A stretch of DNA of 64,000 bases. Source: Pecten maximus (taxonomy: Eukaryota). Numbering within the stretch: the first letter of the stretch is position 1; every line of letters begins with the position of its first letter. The position numbers and the translations under genes are program-made. A model generated the notes under the pieces. The model had not been told where the DNA came from. It saw only the letters and a list, made by a program, of their open reading frames with translations, and did not search any database. The stretch spans positions 32,860,001 through 32,924,000 of the forward strand of contig NC_047021.1 in the NCBI RefSeq assembly GCF_902652985.1, in the 5' to 3' direction. Shown here piece by piece: positions 1 through 38,312 of this stretch.

Positions 1-682
1 GATTATGGCCTAGTAGGACATTGATTCCCAGATGCGTTTCAACTTAGACACAAGCCAAATTGATGAGCGAGCACGTTGTGTTGTGAATCTTCGGTTAGTC
101 TGGGGTAACATGGTATCTGATAGAGGTGTTTAGACTTTATTAGCGAAAACCTTTCTTCTTGTGACACATTTGCCAGTACAATGCAAAACAAAACCAAAAA
201 ACAAACAAACAAAAAGTTTTCAGCTCTCGAGACTGATAGTGGCAAAACGGTTGTCTCAAGGTGGACATGATGGCAGCTGCTGCAGAAAAAAAGGAAGCCT
301 GCAATTGAAAGTGGAGATTATCATGTTTGTATCTGAGCAACAGTTATCGGAGATCGAGGATAGTGTAAACGCAGTCACGAACAGTCTTATAACGCCCTGA
401 AAAATGCATTATCTTTGGTGGTGAGAGAAGTAACATTCTTCACATTCTTCACATTAGTGCAAGAAATATTCACTATTATCTTTGTGTAATGTCAGATGCC
501 ATAAAGACCACCACTTCCCGCCACATCTGTTCCAGGGACTAGACGAAAAGCAGTCGGGTAACGGAAGCGGATATTATTCTTGATGAACTTTTGTATATAG
601 AGATATCATATGGCATGCATTACATGCGAGTGATTGTTGATGACAATTCGGTGTTTACAAGGACCCAACAGACGGGTCCAAT

Positions 683-791
683 CACAGGGGCTTGGCACGA
701 TTTTCCAAATGATAGTCTATATATATATGTATATACCATATACATATATATATATAGACTATCATTTGGAAAATCGTGCCAAGCCCCTGTG
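683..791. mobile_element. 109-bp near-perfect palindromic MITE with CACAGGGG termini and 8-bp TSD (P- or hAT-type)
   Basis: Arm CACAGGGGCTTGGCACGATTTTCCAAATGATAGTCTATATATATAT has an exact inverted copy ending at 791. GGTCCAAT flanks both ends (675-682 and 792-799). Confidence 0.85.
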
Positions 792-907
792 GGTCCAATA
801 TGCTGCAGATATGTAACCAAGATGGAATATTCCTACAGGTATATATGTGTGTTCGTTCAAGTTTAGAGAAATCAGCGGTGGACTAATCACAGTAAAAGGG
901 CTGGGTA

Positions 908-1196
908 TAGTGTTCCGTTAGGGCCAAATTTCCAATATCACTCCTTCGACCTAAACGCGAAAGAGCGAAAACACGATGACAATGGAGCGAAGAAGCGAAA
1001 ACACGATGGCGAAGGAGCGAAAACACGATGACGAAGGAGCGAAGAAGCGAAAACACGATAGCGATGGAGCGATCCTTCGCCAAAAGACGATGGCGAAGGA
1101 GCAAAGTTCCATCGCTCCTTTACCACCATGTTTTCGCTCCTTCGCTTCTTCGCGTTTAGCGGTCGATATTGGAAATTTGGCCCTTACTGAACACCA
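908..1196. mobile_element. MITE with about 35-bp TIRs, TA flanks and internal GCGAAGGAGCGAAAACACGATG-type repeats
   Basis: Left end TAGTGTTCCGTTAGGGCCAAATTTCCAATATC; reverse complement of right end TGGTGTTCAGTAAGGGCCAAATTTCCAATATC. TA on both sides. Confidence 0.8.
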
Positions 1197-2950
1197 TATA
1201 GCTGGGGAATGTTTAGGATGATCCGAATCAGGCTTACAACTAGAAGCAAAACATTTCATTATAAACAGTCGGTACGGCAGTACATCTGATGTAGTTGTTG
1301 AATAGAACATGCTGTCAGATTTAAAATTAGCCTTCTTTGGATTGGGTAGAAACCAAAAGCAACCAGCTTAGTGGAAACTTCACCAGCAACCTAGCTGAAC
1401 GCTGGTTGTCCATACTGATACTATTTGACGAAGCTATCAACATTGTGAAATAACTTGGGTCTTTCCTCGTCCATAGTTTGGCACTACGTTACACTACCAA
1501 GTTTAACATCATGTTGCTCATTATAAAGGGAATTCGTACTTCAACACTCCGATTTAAGTCATAAAAGAATAGAGATACCACAGCAAGACAGGGAAAGGAC
1601 ATGATAACCCCATAGCCTACTAGTATGAAGAGCTAACAGGAATACAGACAAACTGCACTTGAAGTAGTGGATTCTGTGCGTCCACATGTTTTGAAAAGTG
1701 AATGTTCGCATTTCCTGAATAGCTCGATGGATCTGCCTCATCAACAGTACTAGCAGGTTCAACTGACCACACGGGGTTAATATATAAACGTCAGATTAGG
1801 CTGACTGCCTAAAACTTTGGAGATATGCTTCATAAAATACAAATAACTCGGCCATTCTAGTTTTAGCATTTCTCTATTTCTCCTTCCATGAACACTAGCT
1901 ATAGGAATGTGTAAGTGTCTCGACAACGAATAAAAAGCTACTAGTCGTGGTGGAAATGTTGTTTTGCCAGTTGGTTCGTGTGGTATTATTGAAATGAAGA
2001 ACCTTCTCCAACACAGCAAATGAGAAGTTCCGTTATGAGGACATACATGGCTCATTGAAATTGAAAAAGATCACAAGTACTACTATCAAATTGTTCAAAA
2101 CATAATCGATTATTTTTAATTACTGTAGGGATAATTGTAATCGATAGTTTATCATTTCTGATTAACAAATGTCTTAAACACGCGTTTAAATAGTTGTATT
2201 CAATGCAATGCATATATGTATATTGCACTGCCTTCCTCAAGGTCTTTTGCTAGAGAAATTGCAAACTGTGTTTGATGAGTAGATTAGACTTGGTCCTAGA
2301 TTTGACGGCTGGGAAATGCTATGGAAGGGGTCATCCTGAGGTCAATTTTCCGATTACCTATTTTTAATATATTTCAATTAAAAATTTTCATTTCATTTTT
2401 CAAAACCCGGTAACCTTACGAAGAACTCAATACATGTACATGTAAATGAAAATGTAAATTCACTTGAAGACGTTTTAGAAAATGAAAGTAATTTTTTTTA
2501 TAAACTTCATAGATAACAGCTTGGGGGCTTATTCTAAGAAACCTTAGACAATATGTACGGTTTTGGGAAATATTGGTAATCAGGAAATTAACTCTGAATA
2601 TTGTGTTCAGCCTTAATTAGGTGGATACCTAAATAGCACCAGCTTGAGAACCACGTTCCAATATTTATTTATAAAGCATCTAAGCAATCACGCTGTGTAA
2701 AAGAGTATTCGAACCAATAACGAAAAAGGTTCGACCTACCACTACCTTATCACTACATTTCAAAAGAACTTCTGCCTGCAAGTAGGACGTAAGAGGCGAC
2801 TAAACTTGGGATCTTATCTTTTCTCTTCTTTCTAAACAACTTTCTTCTTCCTAATGTCTCTAATGATATTGTCTCACTTTTTCGCCTTTAGTTGAGCCTC
2901 CGCCGCTGTGAGGAAGGCTTCGAAATGTGTTGCTGACCGAGGCATACCAC

Positions 2951-4050
2951 TAACAAGAGGCCCAAAGGACCTGTATCGCTCACATGGATTTTCAGTAATT
3001 GTGACAAAACACTTCAATTTAAGTTATATTACAAATGCTTTCCACAGTTTGTGATCTGCCACTCCGTATCATGCATTACAATCAAAACTTTCATTTCACT
3101 AACATTAAGCTTTCTGGTTCAAAACGTTTGACATTTGGACTTCGAAAATAATAGCAATGGAGTAAAGTATACGTTATTTATGTCCTATGATGCGACTCAT
3201 TTCCTACCACCTCCATATTTGCTGTGCTATAGATTTGATTGGATTTATTTATACCTTTTATATTAATAACCTTTCCACTAACAGGCAGGATTAGAGATCC
3301 ATGTTGTCCTTGACCTTCAGCCTCAAATGACTTTCTCCTTTGACTTGGATTGTTGAACAGTTGAATATTTGTATAATTCCAACCAACTTTTCTCCACAAT
3401 GTCATAACAAAATGTTCATCAGTGAAAAGATACAAAATTTGACCTTGGACTTTGACCTTGATCATTGTCATCAGTATTTGTTTACTTAAAGTATGAGTTT
3501 AACTTGTGAGGCATTGTATTGTGTATCAGAATTCTGAAATAATTGTCGGAGCTCTATACTCCTTGTCAGTGGTATTTCATATTTGGCCTGTGGTCACCTT
3601 GGTTATGCCGTGTATCGCAAAAATCAGGTTGTCCGGTCTTAAAGTGTAACATTTTTTGTGTACATGAGCTCCATCATCTACTTTACTTACAGTATGGAAT
3701 CACCTTGGCGAGGCAGTGTCTCATGTATCTAAGGTAGGCAACTCTTCCCTACATTTTGAACTTTGATCCTACATAAAAAAAAAAGTGTTTGAGCTCATCT
3801 CCTACACTTTTTTTCACTTGAATGCAATAGTTGAGGTACGGTCCGCCTTACTCTGATCGCCCTTTTGACCTTTGACCGATATATACTGCTACAATCAAAG
3901 ACCTGTGAATATGTTACAAAATGTATCTGCCTATTCTTGGCATATAATTTCACATCTGTCGGGGTACTCTGACGAAAATTGTGCATGACCCCACACAAAA
4001 ATCGATCAAACTAGGTCACTCAAGAGACTTTGTCTCGAGTTGCTTAAAAA
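2951..4050 (+). mobile_element. Non-autonomous Helitron/Helentron-like (HINE-like) dispersed repeat
   Basis: Begins AACAAGAGGCCC...ATCGCTCAC, carries internal GACCTT(G) motifs, and ends in an imperfect hairpin GGTCACTCAAGAGACTTTGTCTCGAGTTGCTTAAAAA. This architecture is recalled from common bivalve repeats. Confidence 0.45.
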
Positions 4051-6180
4051 AGATACCTATTATCAAAATGCTTAAATTTTATAAGATTATTTTCTGATTG
4101 TTGCATATAAATCATTACACTTTACCTACATGTAGGTTCGGCCTGCAACTATATTATCACAACACGTTGCCCATACAAAATAATTTGTAGTGAAGGGGAG
4201 ACAACCAGCTATAGGGAACAACCAACCAATTGAAAAAAAATATTTTTGAAACAGCCCCTGTGTATAGAACGTTGAGCCAAGGATAAAATGTCTGGCAGCC
4301 ACTGATTGGCCAGTATGTTATGAAGTGAGAAAATAGATATGTAGCCTGATAGGTAGCTAGCAATAAGAAATGTTGATATAAATTTCGTAAGTCCGATTGT
4401 TTTTTTTCCCAAAAGTTCACGTAATAATAGTAAACAGGTAAACATTTAAGATTTTTGAGAATTTTTACTGCGAAATTCACCTATTTTCAAAATGGCTACC
4501 CTGGAGAAAATTTGAGCTGAAGGACCCAACTTTTTTTTTTGATTAGGTGTTATATCAGACCCTAAACTTTTGTTATAAACCATAATCGTCATATTCAATT
4601 CAAGAATTTGAATGAAATAATCCAAAACGTTAACACTAATGTCTATGGGAAAACAATTGGTTGGTTGGTCTCTTTAGGTAAACCATGCCATTCTTGGTGG
4701 ATAAGCAAAGGCTTGAAGGGATATTGTAAAACAATAACTGTGTGGAGAAAGGGACACGGAATAAGGAAAAGAGGCTCAGTACTCTTCGCCCAAACATGAA
4801 GGAAAAGAGGCTCAGTTCTCTTCACCCAAACATGATTGGTTGTTAAAAAGTCGCTTAATGATGTAACACATTAGACCCAAATGCCCTTAAAAAGTAGGTC
4901 AAAGTGATTCATTTCAACAAACAGGCATTAAATGCCTTCATCCCATGCAGCATTCTAATTGAAATTATCATAAACAAGGACCTCTTGGTTATAGGAACAA
5001 ATTTAACCTATGTGACTTTGAAATTAGGACAAGGTCATTTATCCCAGGATTCTACTGGCCTAATATCATGGTGTATGGCCTATTGGTTATTACATAGGTG
5101 TTTTATGGAAAAGGCCAAAGCTTGACAGATAACCAATGCCACATAACAGCATTTGGTCATCTGCCTCTTGGGTGAAATATCTGGTTGAAGATTGAATGAA
5201 AAATACAAGGAGTGAATGACTTCCATTTTGAATGTTTGACATCCTTTCATAACCAATCTTGTGTACTTTTGGTTTAAAGCTGCCTTCATCTAAAGAAAAA
5301 TAAACAAATTGTTTTTAAAATAGTTTATTTACAACAATAAAATTCTGTTCATTCAGATTAACTTTTCCCAAAATACAAATGTTTGTGAACATGATTTACT
5401 TAATCAGAAATTAAACTTTTACATCTCTCAAACTGATCCAGCCCTTACACACAGATTTTCTTACATATTTGAAACACACTTTCATGCACTCTAAATGTTA
5501 TTTTTGTAGATGTGTAGAATTTCAACATTCTCTTGATGAACTTAAATGTGACAATGAAGATGTTAGATGTAAACTTAATGTAAATTCTTAAATGAACAGT
5601 TTTTCAAACTTCAACACATTATAGAGATTTCATAGATTTTCTCGTACAACTATTTCCAAAAATCACAATATCTTCACAATGATAACAATTCAACCAATGA
5701 AGGTATTTTGTAGGCAATCTACAGATGTTATAGTCCTAAAGGCAGAAGCCAGGATATCAGATACAGTATTTATAGAAGTTTTAAAGAGTACTTATTACCA
5801 AAGAAATAATTTTGTATCATTTCTTAAAGGAAACATTTCACAAAAAGAGGGTTTAGGAGGAGATTTTTTCCATTCACAGTTTCTTATCCATTTAAGGACT
5901 TAATGTGATTACACAAATAAGATTGTATTAAAGAAGATAATTTCTCAAATCCTTCTACTTAATTACTTAAGTATGGCTACTGACTTAAATCTACGAAGTT
6001 TATAGTAAAAAGACCTACAATGTTTATATTACTTATAAATTGTAATTTGACTTTTGATATCCTACTTCAGAAACTTCATGAAAATCTCCTAAATGAATGT
6101 CAACTATTAACATGGTCCTCTTGGATGTTTTCCTCAATGAAGAATGAAATGACAATGAAGATGAGGTCAGATGACAGGGG

Positions 6181-9100
6181 TCAGTGCATAACAGAGTTAA
6201 GAGGTTCTGCTTTGATATTGTTGAAGTCCAGTCCACCATCTGTATCATCATCGATCTCCCCTATCACAGCACTGTAACGAAACACATGTATCATTCAAAT
6301 TGAGTATATATGTTTTTGCAAATAATGTACCAATTCCAGTAACTTTTTCTTTTATTTGATATATTTACTTTAATTAAGTTAAGGAAGTAGAGCAGCTGTC
6401 TTGAACTCATATTAATAAAACTTTTTCCTATTTATTTTTTATTTTTTAGCAAAAATATTACAATAAAAAAAAATCATATCTTCAGCGAAATTGTACAAGT
6501 AATGAGGTCTAAGTTGAATAGATTACTTTCAATCAGTTTCTGCTTCTCAGACATGCAAGCAATTCATTCTACATTATATATCCACATTCTACAGTATATA
6601 TCCACATTCTACATTATATATCCACATTCTACAGTATACATCCACATTCTACATTATATATCCACATTCTACATTATATATCCATAAACAAAACTTAGAT
6701 TATCTCCCTTACACTGATTATCAACAAAACTTGATGATTGTCTCCCCTTAAGCAATAAATATCAGTACGAACATCTGGATGGATATACGTAATTATACTA
6801 ATTAAAGAGGGGATGGTGTTACATTCACTTTCGATCCCTTTCTGCACCTATGGACTATGTGTAATGAAAGCATGGGACTAGCTACATTTTGTTTTTAGTT
6901 GGTTTCAGGGAAAAAATCTTAACAATTACTTAATTGAAGCATTTCTTTTGAAGATTAGGAACCACAACAAATTCAAAGCCAGTCAATTTAATGTAATGGT
7001 ATAACTACTTAAGGTTTGTTTGGTGTACTTCAGAGAATCAAACTAGTCCTTTTGTTTTTGTTTTCACCAGATGCCAGTGACCAAGTCTTCTATTGTTATG
7101 ACATATTCTAGGGGTGCATGCAGAGAGTGAAAGTGAAGATTTTGAACTACAAAGGATGGTTCATAGTTACATCAATCATCTCTGGTTAACAACTTACACA
7201 TTATCCCCTCTGATGATGTATAGTCCCAGTATGACCTGCTCCACACCTTGGGAAGAGCTGTACACACGCTCATGACTTTCATCCAGGATCAAGTTAATGG
7301 TCTGGTCAAAACCCTTCAATGTGCCCTGAAAGTTTAATTTTACAAAATCAAAATCTAGGTAGAGTACACTGATTAATAAAACATCCAATTCATGCAGGGG
7401 TCTGCTTAGTAAAATTTGTGTCTTTGTTGCAAAAGCAGGCAATCATGAAGTTGAGTAATTACGATAATGTGCCCGCTTTGCTGGTTATGATGACTGGAGG
7501 CATCATTATTCAGAACAAATAAAGTACTGTGTCAAAGTCTTCACGAAGTTCAAAAATCGCTTCATTCTTTCGTTTTGGAACTTCCTGTGATAGCCTTCTT
7601 TAAAACATAAGCATGCGGTAGAAATATACATATTCCTAGGTATTGGTGAAGGCAATTCTTTTGATGTGCATTCTTAGATACCCCCCCCAAATAAAATAGC
7701 TATAAAAGACCAGTCATCATTATTATACTTACCACGATAATTCTGCCATCAGCTGTCACTATAGACACAGTATCTGTTGTATGAGTCAAGGATAACTAAA
7801 TAGAACAATATTATGAATAAAAAATATTTGACATATGGAATAAAGGTAATCTAAATGATGTGAAGATATACATATGTATATGCAGCTGTGCACATTTTTT
7901 TTATCCCACAACTGTGTGCTTAATTAACAGATAGCTATAGCTATCCATAAACTATTCTTAAAATTAATCTCTTTAACACTACATAGTACATATAGCCTTG
8001 TCGCACATCAGATTCTGTATATCAAACTTGCACAAACATCTCTCTGTTGATGTAAATAATAAGCAAGCCTACAGATAGGGTACGGAATGGATGGGAAGAT
8101 TGTCCATAAGTATTTAAACATGAGCCAGACATGGTTCATTTATCACTTAAGCTTTCTATACCAAACTTACAATAAACAATGCAACATGTTTTTTGATAAC
8201 AATGCATGCACACAAAACTGACACCTGAAACTTGCTGGGGATGTCAACAAATTAAACAACATTTGACCATAATGTAATCAATTTTGATCCAAACAATGGA
8301 GAAATTATTTACTGAACTGAATTAATTCTGATCAAAACTGCTTTCAATATATGTTCAAATGTTGTTTATAAACATCCCAGGTGTCGGTTTTGTGCGCATG
8401 CATTTTTATTAGAAAAAAAATATTTTTGTCAGTTTGCATTTGGTATAGCTGTATAGATTATAGTTATAGCTATTATAGCTATATATCACTATCACTAATA
8501 CTAGTGATTAATTAACATGTGCCAAACCATAGGCACATGTATCTGGTAACTATAGCTAACACCAGAGTAAAAATTATTTTCAATTACAGATCTGTATATA
8601 TAGTACATATATCAAGGATAATTTTAACTGATATTAATTACATACAAGTGTACATGTAAGAGGAAGGAGTAATGAAAAATACCTTGCCCACGCTGGGGTT
8701 ATTATATAGAACTAGCAAATTCTCGCTCTCAAGTTTCAAGGCAAACATCCTACCACTAGGCTAAAGAGAAATTTCCACTAGTCTGAGCTAGTATACTCTC
8801 TACTTTTACACTTCTCCCTCCTTCACAAACTCTTCGCTCCCGAAGCCACAGCAACACAGCCACAATTATTAACCCAGGTTTTTTATCTCCAAGGAAACCT
8901 GTCAGGCTCCTATAGCTTTCACTTGGGAGTAAACAACGGCCCCAAATTTGTAATAAAATACCCAGCCCAGTTCCGTTATATTCCTCCCTCCTTCAACAAA
9001 GTCTTTAACCCCGAAGACACACACTAAACCCTATACCACCTCCATGGATATTCAGTTGGGCGCCAATGTAATAGGATAGGAAAAATGCATGGCCAGATTG

Positions 9101-10386
9101 GGGTTCGAGTACTACTGTATACCTGGTAATTTTCGCCCCCGTTTAATTTTCGCCATTTTCACCCTTTGAAGTTGGAGCGAATTTAAGATGAAGGTGAAAA
9201 TTTCAAGCTGAATGGAAGGATTTATAAACCATATAGTACATGGGCCAAGTGTAGTCAGATCACAAACATACCCTCTTACTTTTCAACTGTAAAATCATGT
9301 ACTAGGCTTAGAATTTTCAATTAAAAAATGATACATAGTATGTATCATTTTTTAATTGAAAATTCTAAGTCTTTTTTTTTTTAAATTAAGAAGTCTGGTC
9401 ATGAAATACAGAGTGGCATCAAATTCCTGCCATGGAAAAGACGAATTTTATGAGTTAACTGTCGCTTAATTGTGGCATGTGAACAAGAGAAAACACTGGT
9501 CAGTCATTAGTCACGGCGCGGTGAGCTTACAATTGATCGTGTTTGCTTAAAATCACCCATGTATACCCAATACTACATGAATCAATTAATACTACATGAA
9601 TCAGGAGGGAAAAGAAAACATGAGCACAGGTAAATTTTCTTTATTTCACACTGGATTACATTTCACATCTCATGCATATGCTGGTAAGATAATTAGGGAA
9701 CTTGGTAAGTCCAGAGTGTTCCGAGTGCAACTGTATTGAGATTTCTGAACGGAATTCTTCGATTTTACAAACGAAGAAAACCAATTAGTGCAAATTAAAA
9801 ACGGGGCGAATATGTTTTGTGTTGCTCAAGGGCGAAAATAACCTGGGGCGAAAATTACCAGGTATACAGTAACCAGATGCTCTACCGATTGAGCTACCTG
9901 GTCCAATTCTGCTACACAAGTGCCTATGGCCAAACCTGGTATGGCAGGGCTCAAAGTGGTGCCTATTTTAATTTTTGGTGACCTGCATGGTTTAAGATTC
10001 ATCATTCATTGGCAACCAGTTATTGACTTGTTTTGAAAAATATTAGAAATAAAGTAAAACCAGAAAATTTGCTCAAGACTCGGTGCAACCACAGGGGCAG
10101 GTGTAGTGTTAAAATAAAAAATAGCCAGAAATATCTATATATCAAAGACTATCAGCTGGCTATTTTTTACAATATAACGTTAGACATGCATGCCCCGGTG
10201 ATGCAACTGTATGTATTGTTTACATTTTTTGTGCCTTGGTATGCGCGCCGGTCTGTGAAGAAACGTATACATTTGCTATCACACGAATTTCTAATTGATC
10301 AACAAACCGGGAAATAACTTCTTCTTTTGAATAAAGAACATTTTTCGAAGGATACGATTTACATACGATTCAAGTGCGGAAGCCAT
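6181..10386 (-). CDS. LSM8: U6 snRNA-associated Sm-like protein LSm8, 96 aa. Exons 10356-10386, 7733-7773, 7198-7325, 6181-6271
   Basis: Spliced product MASALESYVNHTVSIVTADGRIIVGTLKGFDQTINLILDESHERVYSSSQGVEQVILGLYIIRGDNVAVIGEIDDDTDGGLDFNNIKAEPLNSVMH*. All introns GT-AG with compatible phases; 291 nt total. Confidence 0.97.
6565..6685. repeat. 20-bp tandem repeat (TCCACATTCTACAKTATATA), about 6 copies, in LSM8 intron 3
   Basis: Period-20 repetition is directly visible. Confidence 0.9.
8655..9918 (-). mobile_element. Tandem TRIM-like non-autonomous LTR retroelement with tRNA-like sequences inside the LTRs
   Basis: Minus strand reads: LTR ending ..TTACA (9067), PBS TGGCGCCCAAC (9055-9065, tRNA-Lys type), short internal segment, purine tract GAAGGAGGGAG (8981-8994), LTR remnant, second internal segment, PPT (8811-8825), and a TG...CA LTR at 8655-8810. 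Confidence 0.65.
9115..9869. mobile_element. MITE with TA TSD inserted into the tRNA-like LTR
   Basis: TIRs CTGTATACCTGGTAATTTTCGCCCC and GGGGCGAAAATTACCAGGTATACAG, flanked by TA on both sides. Confidence 0.9.
10090..10200. mobile_element. Degenerate palindromic mini-element with CACAGGGGC terminus
   Basis: CACAGGGGC...AAAAAATAGCCAG and CTGGCTATTTTTT...GCCCCGGTG arms. Flanks GTGCAAC and ATGCAAC form a 7-bp TSD with one mismatch. Confidence 0.6.
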
Positions 10387-10681
10387 CTCTTCTCTTTGGG
10401 ACGAGTTATTGTTTCCGGAAAGAAATGTTAAACTCGGTCCCAAATCATATCAGATAGAGAAATGTAGCAGTACCTGCTCTTATTTTTTACTTATATAAAA
10501 GTATCTCTGGAACAGAAGAAACAAATATATAAATCCGAAAATATATAGAATTACGGCATTATGCGTGACGTTGTAAATGAATGATCCCTTTCGAGCATGC
10601 GCAGTAAATCTTTAATGGCAGCCCCCATGGATTCCATGCCGAGAGCGAGTTGAACACAACATTTATTTCAATTATCTGGAC
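10387..10681. promoter_or_regulatory. Compact bidirectional promoter between LSM8 and MRPL2 (and possibly ERCC1)
   Basis: Divergent start codons are about 295 bp apart. NRF1-like GCATGCGCAG at 10595-10604, ETS-like TTCCGGAA near 10413, CRE half-site GTGACG near 10565. Confidence 0.7.
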
Positions 10682-13600
10682 ATGGCAAAACTTTTTTCCA
10701 CAAGATTATTGTCGACATTGTGTAAAGTGATCACTGAAAGTGGTCTCACACAGCAATCTGCTCTCCAAAGGTAAGTTTTCCTGTATATCAGTAGATTTTT
10801 ATATAATTAAAAACGATGACCTTGTTCCAAGAACCGGCCTGATCGCTGCATCATACAGTTATCTCCCTTTAAGTGTTTGGACATACACATGATAACAATG
10901 GTCAACATCGATCATGATTAATCTTAAATCTATTTAATGATTCCATTCAGCTGTATTGTAAAAGCAACGAGTCCCATTATTTTAAGAATGAGCACAGGTT
11001 CGGGACTAGATTAGCACAATTATTTTTAAGCTGAAGTAATAATAAATAAAAAAAATTAAGGATATATTAAAAAAATCATGTAAATCATTTTTTAACCCAA
11101 TGTCGACCTTATGTACATACATATAAAACATGTAAATACCACATTTATGAAACTAACAAAAATTACTCCTCAAGTGACTTCCATTTCTCTTTAAAATAAT
11201 TAAACACAAATTAGAAACTCTTGCTGGCTAGGTTATATATATATAGGCCATATATTATAAGGTATCCTATTTACATTGTAGCTAGTGTTGTTGGAATCCA
11301 GAGTATCTGTATCTGGCCTTGGGAGACCCTCATGATCAGCCAAGTGACCATATGCATGTAGCCTTTCATGATCATGTCCGATGGGAATCTTATTTATGTC
11401 TGAAGATTCCATTTATCAGAAGTTGATTCCTTCATAACAAAAACTGCAGGGCATCCAGTTGACTTGAATTTTAGTTATTTCAAAAGTCAAAGCACTCTTT
11501 TTCAGAAATTTGAAGGGTCAAAACATGTGAAATAGAAATGTCCGTTCAATCCTAAGAGTCAAACTGACTTTTGGGAGTCAAAAACATACCATCAAGGCAC
11601 AGGGTCATGTCTAGTCTTATATTATAAAATAGCAAGCAATACCTATATATATTGTCAATATATATATATAGGTATTTCTGGCTATTTTTTAATATAAGAC
11701 TAGACATGCCCCTGCCTGCGATCAAGGGTTTATGCATACTTCTGCTGCCCCCATTGCATGATGGTACAAGATGACTAATTAATTTTGGTATGTTGTCTTT
11801 TTTAACAATTGCTTTCTTCCAAATGACTCCCTTGGCACTGTGCATACCTCACTTTTGGTCTTTTGTTGAGCGTTCACCCCTGCAAGGAATGCTTTGGGTT
11901 CTGTTCCCATGCCATCCCAGAGTCTATAAAAATGGCAGTTGCTTCGATTCTCCTGCTTATATTTGTGCACATTGCAGGGCTTTTCTGGGGGCTTTTTGGT
12001 GCCCCATTCCCAATTAAAATTATTTCATATTTAAGCAAGATTCCCAAAATTTACTCCTGAAAAAATCTTTTCCAAATCGCCAATTTTCTTCCCAAAATGA
12101 GACCAAAAGGCCCCATCCAAAACCTGCAGTGAGAAAGCCCTGTAATTTTTGGACATGTATGGCTAATTTCAAATTTGCCCGTTGTCAGTATAAAGCGACC
12201 AGTTGTGAATTGGAATGTCCTGCTTAGTGTCTTTGGCAGTATGCTTCAGTGAGGTAGCACTATAAAGTCAGCATCACTTCGGTTCCTTGCTATCCCAAGG
12301 GGACAAACACAGACATACAATGACTATACTATGTATCATGATCATAGTTCACAAAGCACACACACACACTACACTCATGCATCTCTCACACAATCGATAC
12401 CTTCCTTAAATGATAATAGCTTTTGATATGATGTTAAACAATATACTAAACTAAACCAATCTTAATTAGTGGTCAACATGCAGACAGTAAAACGATTCCA
12501 TTATATGAATTATATTTACAACACCATCAGTGTATGTGTTGCTTTATCATTGCATGAAACAATTGTGACTAGAATCTTAAGTCCTATGAATCAAAAGTTC
12601 ATCAAACCTTTAACCTTGCAGACATAGGTTTTTAATCAGATTCTGAAAATCCCCAAGTGCTATATATACATATATATATATACTTGTATACATTATCTGC
12701 TAATTATGGTGGCTTTGAAGTACTTTACTCTCTCTATAGTATAAAGGTAGACATGAAAAGCTGATTAGAAATGTTGCACAGTAATCAGCCACAAATGTTA
12801 TAATTGGGTTACATAATATTAATGTATTTGTTGCTGGACATATAAATCACACTTGCAGAAGGTAGCCACGACCATTAATTGTCCTTTAGGATATATCACA
12901 TGTACTGTTAGAATATCACATGTACGTACATGTACAACACATATGGTACATCGGTTATTACAATGTTACTAACAGTACCATATGTGTTCCCATGGTGCTG
13001 AAATATATATTTAAAAAAAAGAAAGAAAAACCCATGATATAATCAAGGTTAATTATACACTTCGAATTCAGATATCAGGACCTCAGTTGATCTCTTGCAA
13101 CTGGGATTTAGCTATTACAGAGGTCAAACATATACCCAGTATGTCATATAGACATATATAATATATCTAGCAAACATAAGAGTCAAAATATGATTTTGGG
13201 GAGTCTGTCAAAAACACTCTCAAGGGTCTATGTATACTGGATATGTTATATTACTTCATACTTAAAGATTTTTTCACGTTCATTAAAAATCAATTGATAT
13301 CTATAAATCTTAAAAACAATAACTGGTCATTCTTGTCACTGGTCAGATTAACATAACTGGTGTATGATCATGTGATATCTGTTGTGACCAACTAATATCT
13401 TGTCTTTTGTTCAGTGGTATATATGAGAAGCTAAATGTTATGACATCTTTATCATCAAGGAACAATATCTTTGTGGAAAAATGGATTTGTAATTTTATCA
13501 GCATTGAATTTGATTGGAAAAGAGAACAAATCAAAACAGACTTTGTGATCAGATCAATATTTTTTTGTAGCGTGTGAACTGTGTAAGCTTAAAGCTTGAT

Positions 13601-16600
13601 TTGTGATCCTTTCATACTTCTGGAAAGAGGATGGCTGCTGAGAAAAAGAAATTCAAAATTCCCTCTGCAACAGAGATGGAACAGTCATCAACGAGTACCA
13701 TAAAACCACATGATACTCTTGCTGCTTTCAAGAGACAACAAGTCGAAGATAAATCTTGTAAAACCACAGAAAAGAAGAAAACATTACCTGATCAGAATCA
13801 AGTCAAAATTGCTTCCTTTCTTACATCATCTAAACCATCCACATCAAAAGCTAGCACTTCAACAAACAAATTCAATCAGCCCGAACCTGTAGCTACTGAA
13901 AAAAGGGATGCGTTATCATCATCATCATCAACTGAACCTGAAATAAAAGATAAAGAAGAAACATCAACAAACTCTAGTGATAAATTTATGGCTCCAGTGA
14001 CTGTTGGTAAGGGGAGCACAAGTAACGCCCTGATTGTCAACCCCAGACAGAGAGGCAATCCCATTCTCAAGTCTGTGCGTAACGTAGCCTGGGAATATGG
14101 AGACATTGTGCCGGACTATGTGATGGGCTTGAGTACATGTGCTCTGTATCTGAGTTTAAGGTACCACCAACTTCATCCCAATTACATTCACGACCGACTC
14201 AAGCAGTTAGGCCGGGCGTATGATCTGCGCGTCATGCTGGTCCAAGTGGATATCAAAGAACCTCATCATCTTCTGAAGGATCTTGCCAAGATTTGTATTC
14301 TAGCAGACTGTACACTCATGTTGGCATTCACAACTGAAGAAGCTGGACGCTACCTCGAGACTTACAAAGTTTACGAGTTTAAACCACCTGATGCCATCAT
14401 GGAAAAAACAGATCATGATTTTGTGTCAAAGTTTACTGATTGTATAACCAGTGTGAAGTCTGTGAATAAAACTGATGCGGTGACACTGATGTCAACATTC
14501 AAATCACTCAAAGGTGTCATGGAAGCTTCAAAAGAAGATCTGTCTCTTTGTCCAGGGTTTGGACCTCAGAAAGCCAAGCGTGTGTATGACATATTCCAGG
14601 AACCATTCATGAAAGCCAAGAAACAAAAACCAGAGAAGAGTGATAATAAGTAAAGAAAATATTGGAAATTATTATTTATTTTTTGTTGAAAAAAATAGAA
14701 AAGAAAAAATGTCGAGTGAAATGAAGTTTAACTTCAATTTCAAGTAAATTACTAATTATTTGTATATTGCAATTGAATATAAATGTAGGTGTGTTTACAT
14801 GTATACATGTATAAACTTTGTATATTGGCTGTATTGAACTATATATATCATGAGGAACTTTGATTGTCTGATCTGTTATTGCATTGAATGTACCTTACTT
14901 AGAAATTGAATTATCAATAGTATTGAGTAAAATAGGTGGTTGTGTAATTTTACATACATGTATGTCAGAGTTATTCCCCTTTTTGACAGACAGGTATCTA
15001 GTATGTATCCTGAATTTATTGCATGTAGCTTAGATTTTTGTTGTTGTTGATAAATGGAGATAATGGAATATTTTTGCACAAAAGAAATGGTATCACTTAA
15101 TTTATCAGATGAAATTTAAGAATTGAGAAAAAAAATATAAGTACAGTCAATACAATGTACATTCCTATATGTTAGCTATATGTATCACAGGGATCAATAA
15201 TTCTGGATCATGATCATGATTTATAGAAGACTTTCAGGGTTTTGAATTAAGTAGATATATAGGGTAATGTAAAACTTTCTGAGAAGATTTGTAATGACTT
15301 ATTTTGCAGACCAGTATATCAATTATTTTTACATTTGTGCTATTCATATACAGCTGTATATACATTCAATGTATTAAAGTGTTGGGAGAAAAAAAAATTG
15401 TTTTCTTTTGTTTAAAACAACTTCACACACACAAAATTATATTTGTTATGAACATATATGCAGCTGATATTCTTTTGTTTAAAACAACTTCACACACACA
15501 AAATTATATTTGTTATGAACATATATGCAGCTGATATAAAATGATCTTTCTGTCTCCTGGTAATAAATTTTCTCATGCACCATTAACAAAATACAATTTA
15601 TTACCTTTTAGTATTTATAAATGACAGATATGTTCTGTATTCAGATGTTATAGGATTTTTTTTTTTAAATTGAAGGTGGTTTTATTTTCATTTGCTTCAT
15701 GATCATGACCTATTAACACAAAAATGTCATTTAAGGAGGTGTGATGGGGACACTGAAAGTCACCAAAATTATTGTATAGTGTCATCACACCGAACTGCCA
15801 CACCTGGACACATTTGCTCCACATCCCACCTGGTCACATTATACTGACAATTGGAAAACCAATCTTTAACTTCATCAAGCATAAAGCATGCACAGAAATG
15901 CAAGTACAAATAAATGTACCCATTTTACAGACATGAATAAGGTTTATCTTTGCCAGGGGACAGAACCCATAACCCTTATTCCTCACATTATTCAAGCATT
16001 TGTATGTTATTTTCCTTGTCATTTTTTTCTCTATAATGATGAAAAAGATAATTACAGCTGACTTTTTAAAAGAATGGAATATTTCAAAATAATCACCTGT
16101 AACATGATTGCAGAAAATTATTACCACTTAATTATATAACCCAGCAAGAAGGATATTCGCTGTTTGAGCACTAGGCTACTGTAGTCCTATAAAATAAGAC
16201 TTGGAAGGTTCATTTGAGGTTCGACAAATAACAAAAATCTAAATATCTGATAATGAAGGTAAAAAAATCAGGATATGAACCTTCGAAGTCTTACATTATA
16301 GGACTATAGGCTACTGGCTTGCTTGCAATCCAAGCCTATCATCATAAAGGACCTGTATTTACAGCACAGACAAGTAAGCTGTCAAACGTTCCTCCCCTTC
16401 CTTTATTAGGCCATAAATCTGTTTTTCCAAACATCTCATTACAGACACAGAGCATAAATCGGTAACATCTATTAGATCTTGTAAACCTGGTAAGCGAGAA
16501 ATTATTGTAGAATATTGTTTGTTTGTGCTGATAATCCAAAGTTTGGCTGATTGGACGTCAAAGGCCTTAATTAGTTCATATGCACAAAATGAAAAGGGTT

Positions 16601-19600
16601 CATTGGTGATGTTACGGTGGTGCAAGTCATCTTGAGGGAGTCCACAGAGGTTACATGTCAGTTGTCGACAACTAATTACTAGTACCTGTCCGGTTCTGTG
16701 CCACTTATCTGGCTATTCCTCAGATCCACATCTGAGTGGATGTTTGGCCTGGAGACGCCTGTATGTACATGTCTTGCTATATATTGGGACATATACACAC
16801 AATGTATGTATAAATAATCGTAAACTATGTAGGATTAGGGTTTTAGATCTTTAATAAATTTGATATATCATTCATGAATTGACATTCTAGGCTTTGGTGA
16901 CGGTATATGAGTATATATTAAAATATTTTGTGTATTGCCAGGCAATTAAGGTGATATGAGTCATTTATATAGGGCCAAATAAAATGAATTTACAAAAAAC
17001 TACTTTTAAATCTCTGATCTTTTATAATTATATTGCATGAAGATAATGTAAAGATGAATTTTGTTTACCTACCAACATATGTATAGTACATGTAATACAA
17101 CCTAATACTTCTATAGTATCGTCGATAGAGACACATTGATCTAAAAATATATTAAATTCCATATCCTCCAAAAGGATTTATGCTATCAATAGAAATGTGT
17201 TACTTTTGCAAATTTGTGCCTGCTTAGTCCTCCTATATATGCAGAAATCCAACGAGACAGCTAAGTAACATCAGCCTTGATAGAAATTCAAGTACACTCC
17301 ACTATGAAATTTTTGTCTGTTTAGCCATCCTCAGGCACAAATCTAATGAGACTTGAATTTAAGATGGATGGATGTGACTTAGCTGTCAAGTTGGATTTTG
17401 ATCTGCCCGAGGATGGCTAATTATAAGTAGCTGAAATTCTGCAAATAATAATACTTAGAGCTCGAGTAATACATAAATCTAAAAATAGCTGTGCAAAGTT
17501 TATGACATTCATCTACAAGTTACATTTGTAAATAGGAGTGAGTCTTGTAGCCTGAGTTCTTTCTGCAGGCTACAACACCAGATGTGAATTGGTGTCATAA
17601 TCTGTCCTTTACAGTGACTAAAATCTTGTCTTCGGAACAGCATAAACTCATGTTAAGATGAATGATTATTTTTCTTGTCTGGAATTTTGACAAATGGACT
17701 CTGCTGCCACTCACAATAGAGTAACTTCATCATTTAATGCAGTGTAACCGTGACATTATAAATTGACATCATCATCAATTGCACATGTTAAAGGGAACAG
17801 GCCCATGTAAGACTCTGTTAGTGTTCATGCAGTTGTCTCTAATACAGAACTGTATTTCAGGTATGGAATTCACACAGCAGCTGTCCTGGAGGCCAAACAC
17901 AGGTATACAGATGAAAACATAGACCTGAACAAAGATACCCTCAAACCACAAAGACTGTTCAAAAGTGGAGGCAGGGACCCTGAAACAGGTGTGTTATAAC
18001 TAAAAACTAAGATTTGAAAAAAAAAAAAAAATAGAAACTGCTGGTTCCATAAAGTTTTGATAACCATATGACAAGTTGAATTACTGTACATATTTCTGAA
18101 GGAAAGAATAAATCATAAAATCTCTATAATGAGGAGGCCCTGTTTGAATAATTTTCAAGAAAACATGATATTAGCCAAACCTTGACATTAACAGATGTGA
18201 TATTAAATGGAGTGAACAGCAAATTATGAAATCTCTGTCTATAATCAACATTGACATTAACAGATATTAAATGGAGTTACATGTATAAGCAAATTTTAAA
18301 ATCATATATCATGGAGTTCAAAGTAAATCATAACACCTCCATCTTTAATCAACAGGTGCTGTTTGAATCACTTATAAGTTTAAGGTTATGAAACACTATC
18401 AAATGGCCAAATTACTGTATTCATCAGACAATAAGTGCGTGCCTAGTGTTTATACAACCTACATTCATTGCAATTGAGTAAAACTGTGAACAGGTGTAAT
18501 TTAATTGTCTTCTAATAAGACCATCCCCTTTTATTGTGAAGTGACCTTGTATTACTCGTTATATCACCAGGAAGAGTAGTGTACAAGCGTGTTGGCGGAG
18601 GCCATAAACAGTCCCTTCGATTGGTCAGATTTGATTACAATGTGCCAGAAAAGAAGACAGATGTTGGTTACGAGAGAGTTATCCATGTCCGTAAGGATCC
18701 CTGTCGTACAGCACATATTGCTATCACCGCAAGTGGTAACAGGAAACGCTACACTCTGGCATCGGACAGCACAAAGACGGGTGATCTGATCAAAACCTTT
18801 GCGGATATCCCTGATCTTCCGGGTAAGTTGATACATTCGATTATATTGGGCGTCTGGGTGGTGCACTGGACAACAGTCCATGACCATCCTAAAACTGGGT
18901 TACGCTCACTTTCACTGTAGATCAGCTCCCCTGGAATTTGTCAAGGCAAAATCGAAGGCTTGACCAGTTACCAACTTGTGGATAAAACCAGGAAACTTGT
19001 TGGATGTTTTCATGTAAATCAAATGAATCTGAAAATCACATACCAATAAATTGATTGACTTTGAATTTGGTTGTGGATCCTCTTTAATCTTCAAAAAAGA
19101 AATATATCAGCTTCAGTGATTGCCTGATTGGTCAGATGTTTGCTTTATCACCAATCAAATAGCTAGTTCGATTTTGCCCTGATGTGTTTCAGTGGTGCAG
19201 AATGTGTAGAAGTTTGAGCATTGACAACCTCTGCATTCTGTGGCCACTTCACCAAACAGCCACCCTTAAGGTAGTTAGGGGAAGAGAGTTTGTGTGAACA
19301 GCTTTGTATCACAAAAACAGTCAGGAGTCTAGCCATGTAACCTCAGGTGAATGTCCGAGGTGTGTGGTTCCACACTACCTACCTGTGGCAATTTGTGTTT
19401 CTTGAAAAGCTGAGAAATGGGTAGGTCTGTGCTGTCATGGATGAGTCCTTGGGCAAGACATGAACACTTTACCTTAGTTACTCTGGATAGCATGTGGCAG
19501 GCCTCCTGTATGTTGTTCGGTGAAAAAAAATCACTAAAAAATAAAATAAAATGAATACGTAAATTATATCTGAGGAAGTCTGGTGGGTTTGAAAATTTGT

Positions 19601-20158
19601 GTGCAATTTCTTTTTCCATCATAAGTTTGACAGGCTAGTGAAACAATAAGGCACCAGGTGGCCATCTTCAAAATGGCTATGTTGACATGTATACATCCAC
19701 ATAGAGTATATCTCCTAACCTCTATTCTTTGTGTTGTAGTATCTCCAGAGGCAGGCAATCAGTACCCAGTGGGATCCCTGCCTGTCGGCACCATTATCCA
19801 CAATATAGAACGGTGGCCGAAGGAGGGTGGCAGAGTGGCACGGGCAGCCGGAGCGAGTGGCATGATAACTCGTAAACTAGAAGACAACAGTGTAGTTATT
19901 AGTATGCCGTCAAAGAAAGAAATGCGTGTAGACCAGTACGCTATGGCTACAGTTGGTAGGGTTTCCAATCCCGGTCATCAGGATGTTATCATCGGAAAGG
20001 CGGGGAGAAATCGTTGGAAGGGTATTAGACCCAGCAGTGGATTGAAACAGAAGAAAAGTGGTTATCACGGGAAGAAAATAAACAAACCAAAGGCTATTAA
20101 GAGCTATGTCAAAATACAGGCACCAACTTCTACAGACTTTAAACAAAATCATGACTGA
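10682..20158 (+). CDS. MRPL2: Mitochondrial large ribosomal subunit protein uL2m, about 295 aa. Exons 10682-10770, 17861-17988, 18571-18822, 19740-20158
   Basis: Exons 2-4 encode [70 protein letters not shown], all uL2 motifs. Exon 1 [16 protein letters not shown].. resembles a transit peptide and ends AG/GTAAGT in the phase exon 2 needs. Total 888 nt. Exon 1 is less certain than exons 2-4. Confidence 0.9.
11598..11714. mobile_element. Palindromic mini-element related to 10090-10200
   Basis: Arms CAGGGTCATGTCTAGTCTTATATT and AATATAAGACTAGACATGCCCCTG around an AT-rich centre. Confidence 0.7.
11975..12142. mobile_element. Short hAT-like MITE
   Basis: Termini CAGGGCTTT and AAAGCCCTG; no clear TSD. 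Confidence 0.5.
12176..12460 (+). mobile_element. SINE fragment (molluscan Meta-SINE-like body and tail)
   Basis: Contains TCAGTATAA...TGCTTCAGTGAGGTAGCACTATAAA...GTTAAACAA with an AAAC-type tail. A related motif occurs inverted near 42109-42135. Family assignment is from memory. Confidence 0.4.
13631..14653 (+). CDS. ERCC1: DNA excision repair protein ERCC1, 340 aa, single coding exon
   Basis: Central domain motifs [64 protein letters not shown], followed by tandem HhH motifs [21 protein letters not shown]. The ORF is intact, with a low-complexity S/T/K N-terminus. Confidence 0.97.
15404..15540. repeat. Tandem duplication of about 67 bp
   Basis: CTTTTGTTTAAAACAACTTCACACAC...GCAGCTGATAT occurs twice in direct succession. 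Confidence 0.85.
16182..16306. mobile_element. 125-bp MITE with 10-bp flanking direct repeat
   Basis: TIRs TAGTCCTATAAAATAAGACTTGGAAGGTTCAT and ATGAACCTTCGAAGTCTTACATTATAGGACTA. TAGGCTACTG lies at 16172-16181 and 16307-16316. Confidence 0.8.
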
Positions 20159-35724: not shown

Positions 35725-38312
35725 GTGTGTAGGGGACACCATCAGCAATGGTCACTAGATGACGGGTTTGTGGGGGACACCTACAGCAATGGTCACTAGA
35801 TGACGGGTTGGTGGGGGACACCATCAGCAATGGTCACTAGATGACGGGTTTGTGGGGGTCACATACAGCAATGGTCACTAGATGACGGGTTTGTGGGGGA
35901 CACCTACAGCAATGGTCACTAGATGACGGGTTTGTGGGGGACACATACAGCAATGGTCACTAGATGACGGGTTTGTGGGGGACACCATCAGCAATGGTCA
36001 CTAGATGACGGGTTTGTGGGGACACATACAGCGATGGTCACTAGATGACGGGTGTGTAGGGGACACGTACAGCAATGGTCACTAGATGACGGGTGTGTAG
36101 GGGACACGTACAACAATGGTCACTAGATGACGGGTTTGTGGGGGACACTTACAGCAATGGTCACTAGATGACGGGTTTGTGAGTGACACATACAGCAATG
36201 GTCACTAGATGACGGGTTTGTGAGTGACACATACAACAATGGTCACTAGATGACGGGTTTGTGGGGGACACCTACAGCAATGGTCACTAGATGACGGGTT
36301 TGTGGGGGACACCTACAGCAATGGTCACTAGATGACGGGTTTGTGGGGGACACCTACAGCAATGGTCACTAGCTATAGATGACGGGTTTGTGGGGGGACA
36401 CATACAGCAATGGTCACTAAATGACGGGTTTGTGGGGGGACACATACAGCAATGGTCACTAGATGACGGGTGTGTAGGGGACACCTACAGCAATGGTCAC
36501 TAGATGACGGGTTTGTGGGGGACACCTACACCAATGGTCACTAAATGACGGGTTTGTGGGGGACACATACAGCAATGGTCACTAGATGACGGGTTCGTGG
36601 GGGACACCATCAGCAATGGTCACTAGATGACGGGTTTGTGGGGGACACCTACAGCAATGGTCACTAGATGACGGGTTTGTGGGGGACACATACAGCAATG
36701 GTCATTAGATGACCGGGGTAGGGAGGACACCTACAGAAATGGTCACTAGATGACGGGTTTGTGGGGGCCACCTACAGCAATGGTCACTAGCTAGATGACG
36801 GGTTTGTGGGGGCAACCTACAGCAATGGTCACTAGATGACGGGTTTGTGGGGGACACATACAGCAATGGTCACTAAATGACGGGTTTGTGGGGGGACACA
36901 TACAGCAATGGTCACTAAATGACGGGTTTGTGGGGGGACACATACAGCAATGGTCACTAGATGACGGGTTTGTGGGGGACACCTACAGAAATGGTCACTA
37001 GATGACGGGTTTGTGGGGGACACCTACAGCAATGGTCACTAGATGACGGGTTTGTGGGGGACACCTACACCAATGGTCACTAGATGACGGGTTTGTGGGG
37101 GGACACATACACCAATGGTCAGTAAATGACGGGTTTGTGGGGGACACCTACAGTAGGGGACACCTACAGCAATGGTCACTAGATGACGGGTTTGTGGGGG
37201 ACACCTACACCAATGGTCACTAAATGACGGGTTTGTGGGGGACACATACAGCAATGGTCACTAGATGACGGGTTCGTGGGGGACACCATCAGCTATGGTC
37301 ACTAGATGACGGGTTTGTGGGGGACACCTACAGCAATGGTCACTAGATGACGGGTTTGTGGGGGACACATACAGCAATGGTCACTAGATGACCGGGGTAG
37401 GGAGGACACCTACAGAAATGGTCACTAGATGACGGGTTTGTGGGGGACACATACAACAATGGTCACTAGATGACGGGTTTGTGGGGGACACCTACACCAA
37501 TGGTCACTAAATGACGGGTTTGTGGGGGACACCTACAGCAATGGTCACTAGATGACGGGTTTGTGGGGGACACCTACAGCAATGGTCACTAGATGACGGG
37601 TTTGTGGGGGACACCTACAGCAATGGTCACTAGATGACGGGTTTGTGGGGGACACCTACAGCAATGGTCACTAGATGACCGGGGTAGGGAGGACACCTAC
37701 AGCAATGGTCACTAGATGACAGGTTTGTGGGGGACACCTACAGCAATGGTCACTAGATGACCGGGGTAGGGAGGACACCTACAGCAATGGTCACTTGATG
37801 ACGGGTTTGTGGGGGACACATACAACAATGGTCACTAGATGACGGGTTTGTGGGGGACACCTACACCAATGGTCACTAAATGACGGGTTTGTGGGGGACA
37901 CATACAGCAATGGTCACTAGATGACGGGTTTGTGGGGGACACCTACAGCAATGGTCACTAGATGACCGGTGTATGGAGGACACCTACAGCAATGGTCACT
38001 AGATGACGGGTTTGTGAGTGACACCTACAGCAATGGTCACTAGATGACGGGTTTGTGGGGGACACATACAGCAATGGTCACTAGATGACGGGTTTGTGGG
38101 GGACACCATCAGCTATGGTCACTAGATGACGGGTTTGTGGGGGACACCTACAGCAATGGTCACTAGATGACGGGTTTGTGGGGGACACCTACAGCAATGG
38201 TCACTAGATGACGGGTTTGTGGGGGACACATACAGCAATGGTCACTAGATGACCGGTGTATGGAGGAACACTACAGCAATGGTCACTAGATGACGGGTTT
38301 GTGGGGGACACA
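35725..38312. repeat. 41-bp G-rich satellite (CAGCAATGGTCACTAGATGACGGGTTTGTGGGGGACACCTA), about 62 copies
   Basis: Period 41 measured at 37561 and 37602; variant units contain CCGGGGTAGGGAGG. Confidence 0.97.

Follow-up and report, generated by a model that had tools for sequence, protein, structure and literature searches.

Single-exon ERCC1 nested in the first intron of MRPL2 in the scallop Pecten maximus: a probable retrogene that may use the promoter and first exon of its host

Introduction

How does a gene whose coding sequence is divided by introns in vertebrates, and apparently in other molluscs, come to lie in one piece within an intron of an unrelated gene, and from which promoter would it be transcribed there? 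This question is raised by ERCC1 of the king scallop Pecten maximus. In this study, we analysed a stretch of 64,000 nucleotides of contig NC_047021.1 (the window; its positions are used throughout) from the 918-Mb P. maximus assembly. ERCC1 lies in the window as a single exon within the first intron of MRPL2, on the same strand, and it is the only ERCC1 locus found in the assembly. The linkage is conserved in scallops, and the two genes are annotated as one in three relatives. On balance, these findings favour a model in which ERCC1 is an ancient orphan retrogene that would be expressed from the promoter and first exon of its host, as a compound locus of pteriomorph bivalves.

ERCC1 is nested inside intron 1 of MRPL2

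The gene model of MRPL2 was established first from its downstream exons. Exon 4 as the sole query identified a scallop MRPL2 of 295 aa, and a further protein search gave XP_033744937.1, which is named '39S ribosomal protein L2, mitochondrial-like [Pecten maximus]' in RefSeq. When the four exons, all bounded by GT-AG, were joined, their translation was exactly that of XP_033744937.1 (295 aa). Exons 3 and 4 matched PF00181 and PF03947 (Ribosomal_L2_N and Ribosomal_L2_C) in Pfam, and the protein has an N-terminal extension that is absent from bacterial L2, which identifies it as uL2m/MRPL2.

The reading frame of exon 2 is without a Met and runs into a stop codon 51 nt upstream, and the start exon must therefore lie upstream. 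We scanned all ATG-to-GT segments in the correct phase from 9.0 to 17.86 kb. The segment at 10682-10770 had the highest score (12.8), and the other segments reached at most 9.5; between ERCC1 and exon 2 the maximum was 6.8, with no presequence-like candidate. The peptide of exon 1 is basic and Ser/Thr-rich with a single acidic residue, and is presequence-like by composition. Elsewhere in the P. maximus genome, exon 1 with its flanks does not recur. Residues 1-30 of MRPL2 from Mizuhopecten and Ylistrum matched the window only at 10682-10771, with 60-67% identity (E 7e-6 and 2e-6). The Pecten exon-1 peptide is clearly homologous to the N-termini of these proteins. For Mizuhopecten, the model of the genome authors (OWF41974.1) and the RefSeq model predict the same protein.

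The ERCC1 open reading frame (ORF) begins 2,860 bp past the donor of exon 1 and ends 3,207 bp ahead of the acceptor of exon 2, on the strand of MRPL2 (Table 1). Other ORFs of intron 1, of 75-106 aa, had no match in Pfam, and a further nested gene was not evident. A preliminary description of the window had selected 10682-10770 as the best in-phase first exon of MRPL2 and had placed a single-exon ERCC1 inside a same-strand 7-kb intron. The scan and the exact match to XP_033744937.1 agree on the exon, and all coordinates of the nested gene hold. It had also named a different MRPL2 first exon past 14653 as the finding that would speak against nesting, and nothing competitive was found there by the scan. 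These results make it practically certain that ERCC1 is nested within intron 1 of MRPL2, an arrangement that is already implicit in RefSeq.

The nested ERCC1 is a single-copy gene with an uninterrupted coding sequence

The scallop protein contains the Rad10 domain PF03834 (E 2.3e-48, profile positions 2-115 of 115). Residues 273-326 matched HHH_5, HHH_2, and HHH in Pfam, and the protein also matched the human ERCC1 chains 2a1j_B and 1z00_A of the double helix-hairpin-helix (HhH2) domain. By these matches, the C-terminal HhH2, which is the XPF-pairing domain in this family, is predicted to be present. Residues 126-329 were aligned to human ERCC1 93-296 without gaps (E 5e-94). The nearest ERCC1 proteins are those of other scallops, with 80-82% identity.

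It had been proposed to look for a second, intron-containing ERCC1, and we carried out this search in the whole 918-Mb assembly, using the Pfam model and, at E<=1, the protein. One ERCC1 locus was found, and no intron-bearing parental copy was detected. The window ERCC1 is therefore very likely the sole functional ERCC1 of P. maximus.

Vertebrate ERCC1 has the same protein architecture as the scallop protein, but it is a multi-exon gene. Its human exon VIII is 72 nt in size. In Dreissena, ERCC1 isoform X2 lacks exactly 24 aa, which correspond to scallop residues 267-290 and human residues 234-257 (or 235-258, as a flanking Lys is ambiguous). This gap falls on the same region as human exon VIII, for which skipping has been described (PMC11488268). 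The ERCC1 isoforms of Haliotis differ by 2 residues and those of Patella by 1 residue. Taken together, the isoform pairs of Dreissena, Haliotis, and Patella point to coding introns at four or more positions. The scallop ORF is uninterrupted at every intron point implied by the other molluscs, and unlike in vertebrates, the counterpart of exon VIII is continuous with its neighbours.

Table 1. Features of the LSM8/MRPL2/ERCC1 locus (window positions)
Feature	Position	Strand	Remarks
ERCC1 coding sequence	13631..14653	+	single exon, 340 aa and stop
MRPL2 exon 1	10682..10770	+	29-codon presequence-like peptide and 2 nt (phase 2); donor AAG/gtaagt
MRPL2 intron 1	10771..17860	+	7,090 bp, host of ERCC1
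MRPL2 exon 2	17861..17988	+	
MRPL2 exon 3	18571..18822	+	Ribosomal_L2_N
MRPL2 exon 4	19740..20158	+	Ribosomal_L2_C, stop codon included
Candidate 5' untranslated part of ERCC1	13415..13630	+	acceptor-like ...ttgttcag/T at 13415 and ...tttttgtag/C at 13571
Candidate intronic poly(A) signals	15373..15567	+	ATTAAA at 15373, AATAAA at 15562; motif match
Putative divergent LSM8/MRPL2 promoter region	10101..10700		sole CpG-retaining island in 2.2-19.8 kb
LSM8 gene	6181..10386	-	coding exons 10386..10356, 7773..7733, 7325..7198, 6271..6181; 96 aa

The arrangement is shared by scallops and apparently by oysters

ERCC1 and MRPL2 were each assigned to a contig of one and the same length in four scallops: Pecten (46,316,487 bp), Mizuhopecten (2,637,271 bp), Ylistrum (749,958 bp), and Argopecten (42,869,663 bp). 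In Ylistrum, the two proteins are listed as XP_060076418.1 'ERCC-1-like isoform X1' and XP_060076419.1 'uL2m-like isoform X2', and in Mizuhopecten as XP_021370970.1 (ERCC1, X1) and XP_021370971.1 (MRPL2, X2). The oyster Crassostrea virginica has XP_022298333.1 for ERCC1 (X1) and XP_022298334.1 and XP_022298335.1 for MRPL2 (X2 and X3), and a second locus with XP_022300348.1 and XP_022300349.1. Since the accessions follow one another and the isoform labels complement each other, the RefSeq pipeline saw a single gene in these three species.

A further, newer RefSeq model of C. virginica, XP_078339427.1 (537 aa), consists of ERCC1 without its HhH2 domain in residues 1-270 and then of MRPL2 from exon 2 on. 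By this fusion, which is either a true read-through isoform or a modelling artefact, oyster ERCC1 too belongs to one transcription unit with MRPL2 and precedes its exon 2. At the homologous position of Pecten stands TCT/GTGAAT (14461), which is of phase 0 and would be out of frame with exon 2. Among the oyster contigs from ENA/Logan, some have ORF calls that start in the intron before the last exon of MRPL2, and because the ORFs begin in intron sequence, these contigs are unspliced. Oyster contigs of 2.8-5.2 kb encode the full ERCC1 of 326-327 aa, which suggests that the coding sequence is likewise uninterrupted in oysters.

ERCC1 and MRPL2 were found on different contigs in Solemya, a protobranch, and in Nucella, a gastropod. 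This separation in the outgroups suggests that the arrangement postdates the protobranch split and predates the divergence of oysters and scallops, which is several hundred million years old. A search with the N-terminal half of MRPL2 gave no additional mollusc MRPL2 for the comparison of linkage. Judged from these annotations and contigs, the arrangement is old and common to scallops and probably oysters, and its distribution seems to be confined to pteriomorph bivalves. A recent event in Pecten does not fit four scallop genera, and apparently oysters, having the same arrangement; the event is much older than the preliminary description had implied.

The MRPL2 of Argopecten irradians (XP_069101542.1) has an N-terminus of 48 residues that is unlike that of the other scallops and has no match in the window. 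It was probably mis-modelled, with the distant first exon missed.

ERCC1 may be transcribed from the divergent LSM8/MRPL2 promoter

The start codons of MRPL2 and of LSM8, which is read from the minus strand (ATG at 10386), stand head-to-head at a distance of 295 bp. The CpG observed/expected ratio (o/e) is 1.13-1.44 at 10,101-10,700 and 0.1-0.5 over the rest of the locus. By inspection only, TTCCGGAA was noted inside the island at 10413, TGACG at 10566, and GCATGCGC at 10595. Over the 830 bp that precede the ERCC1 ATG, there are 6 CpG (o/e 0.13-0.5). In oysters, methylation has been reported to climb sharply past the transcription start site and to reach a plateau on the bodies of housekeeping genes, and promoters are generally unmethylated (PMC4378273). 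The CpG pattern therefore fits a single promoter at 10.1-10.7 kb and a methylated unit that extends through ERCC1 to the end of MRPL2.

Ahead of the ERCC1 ATG, two acceptors of the polypyrimidine-YAG type are present, at 13415 and 13571. They were judged by direct reading, as a crude weight matrix failed to separate the three known acceptors of MRPL2. Joining MRPL2 exon 1 to 13571 gives an upstream ORF (uORF) of 31 codons with its stop 53 nt ahead of the ERCC1 ATG and no further upstream ATG, and joining it to 13415 gives a uORF of 83 codons and four more ATGs. A fusion of the presequence with ERCC1 is not produced by either join, owing to an in-frame TGA at 13604. The first canonical poly(A) signals past the ERCC1 stop are those at 15373 and 15562.

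These features are compatible with the use of alternative terminal exons, and they are no proof of it for P. maximus. From the isoform labels in the relatives, the CpG pattern, and the acceptors, we infer, with somewhat better than even confidence, that exon 1 of MRPL2 is shared with ERCC1. In such a locus, ERCC1 would be transcribed from the LSM8/MRPL2 divergent promoter. Exon 1 would be spliced to 13571 or 13415, and cleavage and polyadenylation within the intron would yield the ERCC1 mRNA; alternatively, exon 1 would be spliced to exon 2 at 17861 to yield the MRPL2 mRNA. The MRPL2 start codon would then form a short uORF in the ERCC1 mRNA, and ERCC1 would be translated via reinitiation or leaky scanning.

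Several points weigh against the sharing of exon 1. The start codon of MRPL2 has a strong context, with G at -3 and G at +4, and a shared exon would therefore tax the translation of ERCC1. That the one-gene labels mean transcripts with a common exon structure or splice site is an inference on the annotation pipeline, and in RefSeq the ERCC1 and MRPL2 of P. maximus and Argopecten are separate, without isoform labels. Not all promoters are marked by retained CpG.

ERCC1 could instead be an ordinary nested gene with its own promoter in 12.8-13.6 kb and nothing shared with its host, and the merged labels elsewhere would then be due to rare read-through or chimeric reads. The separate RefSeq listing in the two scallops and the strong upstream ATG that a shared exon would set before ERCC1 fit this possibility, as does a TATA-like run at 13419-13427. 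However, no CpG-retaining island is present ahead of ERCC1, good acceptors lie just upstream of its ATG, and three independent species annotations merge the two genes. We therefore regard a promoter of its own as possible but the less likely explanation.

Beyond the sharing of exon 1, ERCC1 and MRPL2 might have been an obligate single transcription unit in pteriomorphs over several hundred million years. The choice between splicing and polyadenylation would then set the ratio of repair to mitoribosome products, the MRPL2 start codon would act as a uORF gate, and the fusion product of the oyster might be real. This stronger version is tentative, and we consider it rather doubtful. A functional coupling of LSM8, MRPL2, and ERCC1 is speculation.

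The intronless ERCC1 is probably a retrogene

Since ERCC1 is present as the sole copy and lacks the introns that are implied elsewhere, it is reasonable to regard it as a retrogene that took the place of its parent, and we consider the retrogene origin of scallop ERCC1 likely. Before the divergence of scallops and oysters, a processed ERCC1 copy would have inserted into intron 1 of MRPL2 in sense orientation. The intron-bearing parent would then have been lost, leaving the retrocopy as the only ERCC1.

The traces that such an insertion might leave were absent. After the ERCC1 ORF, no A-rich tract of >=19/25 was found as a remnant of a poly(A) tail, and no direct repeat flanking ERCC1 was found as a target-site duplication. 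Both results speak against retroposition at first sight, but the loss of these hallmarks is expected at such an insertion age, and their absence is uninformative rather than contrary. A further weakness is that the introns of ERCC1 in other molluscs were read from protein isoforms. The preliminary description had regarded ERCC1 as a retrocopy that may have replaced its parent. The sole copy and the missing introns agree with it, and the insertion traces give it no support.

Alternatively, no retroposition took place, and ERCC1 is an old neighbour of MRPL2 from which all coding introns were removed in place, e.g., by recombination with its own cDNA, with MRPL2 later gaining a distant upstream exon 1. 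Introns are known to be lost wholesale, and neither a poly(A) tail nor a target-site duplication is left at ERCC1. However, the two genes are on separate contigs in Nucella and in the chromosome-scale assembly of Solemya. In addition, the exon-1 peptide of MRPL2 abuts the divergent housekeeping promoter shared with LSM8 and thereby resembles an original start of MRPL2. Loss in place is improbable. Hardly credible is that the nesting itself is an annotation artefact, with 10682-10770 not belonging to MRPL2 and the real exon 1 within 14654-17860: the RefSeq MRPL2 of Argopecten does carry an unrelated N-terminus, but this has no match in the window and resembles a translated AT-rich intron, the exon-1 peptide is kept in three scallops and alike in both Mizuhopecten predictions, and in-phase alternatives score no more than 6.8 against 12.8.

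Discussion

The closest parallel to a retrogene on a host promoter is given by mammalian genes. Retrocopies in host introns can be expressed with upstream exons belonging to the host, e.g., Taf9 in Ak6 (Carelli et al. 2016, PMC4772013), and cases in which an orphan retrogene took the place of its parent have been described (Ciomborowska et al. 2013, PMC3548309). As in these cases, ERCC1 is an intronless copy in sense within a host intron, with the host promoter and 5' exon probably used; the parent is absent, and an essential housekeeping function is carried by the copy. The mammalian cases are mostly younger, whereas ERCC1 is molluscan and apparently older than the split of scallops and oysters, with the hallmarks gone.

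In its architecture, the locus resembles the cholinergic locus, in which the VAChT ORF lies whole in one exon within intron 1 of ChAT and exon 1 is shared, throughout metazoans (PMC7524744). In both, a single exon that lies in intron 1 of the outer gene contains the whole inner ORF, and both genes are read from one strand. At the cholinergic locus, the shared exon 1 and alternative splicing give rise to two unrelated proteins. Unlike ERCC1 and MRPL2, ChAT and VAChT serve a common pathway. A further difference is that the shared exon of the scallop would carry the start codon of the host and would make a uORF. The sharing of exon 1 is known for the cholinergic locus and would apply to the scallop by our reasoning; the former is found across metazoans, and the latter seemingly only in pteriomorphs.

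A literature search for ERCC1 together with MRPL2 returned only unrelated gene lists. The ERCC1/MRPL2 locus joins known situations, and what is new is that it is molluscan, deeply conserved, and formed by an unrelated housekeeping pair. If the model of an orphan retrogene on a host promoter is true, the locus would be a clear invertebrate case in which a retrocopy has taken over from an essential gene and survives on the promoter and first exon of its host. It would also add to the ChAT/VAChT type a second locus with deep conservation, here of functionally unrelated housekeeping genes, and would be a natural system for the study of intronic polyadenylation versus splicing and of translation after a uORF. 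The arrangement also accounts for the RefSeq records of several bivalves in which ERCC1 and MRPL2 appear as isoforms of a single gene. Its practical value lies mostly in annotation, as such loci can be mishandled by pipelines for gene counts and orthology.

LSM8, repeats and composition around the locus

The exon junctions of LSM8 are all GT-AG, and its joined frame is open. The best PDB match of exon 3 was human LSm8 (3jcr_8, E 2.6e-21), and the next was SmE (3e-5).

Several repeats were observed in MRPL2 intron 1. A 67-nt unit is present in two tandem copies at 15403-15536 (100% identical), downstream of ERCC1 and just before the AATAAA at 15562. A palindrome resembling a miniature inverted-repeat transposable element lies at 11600-11714, with 53-nt arms that are 92% complementary and 9 nt apart. 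A related arm was found in the first intron of LSM8 at 10092-10142, and the two share odd peptide motifs in translation. An inverted repeat of 41 nt (12174-12214 and 15818-15858, 78% complementary, 3.6 kb apart) flanks ERCC1 and may be due to chance or to two opposed copies of a repeat.

The CpG landscape changes along the window: the region of LSM8, MRPL2, and ERCC1 (~2.3-21 kb) is strongly depleted, and the sequence from 23 kb is not. The AT-rich stretches at 43.6-44.8, 55.8-58, and 62.5-62.9 kb have a CpG o/e near 2. A GC-rich block at 36001-38000 has a GC content of 0.52 and a GC skew of +0.27, compared to a background of ~35% GC.

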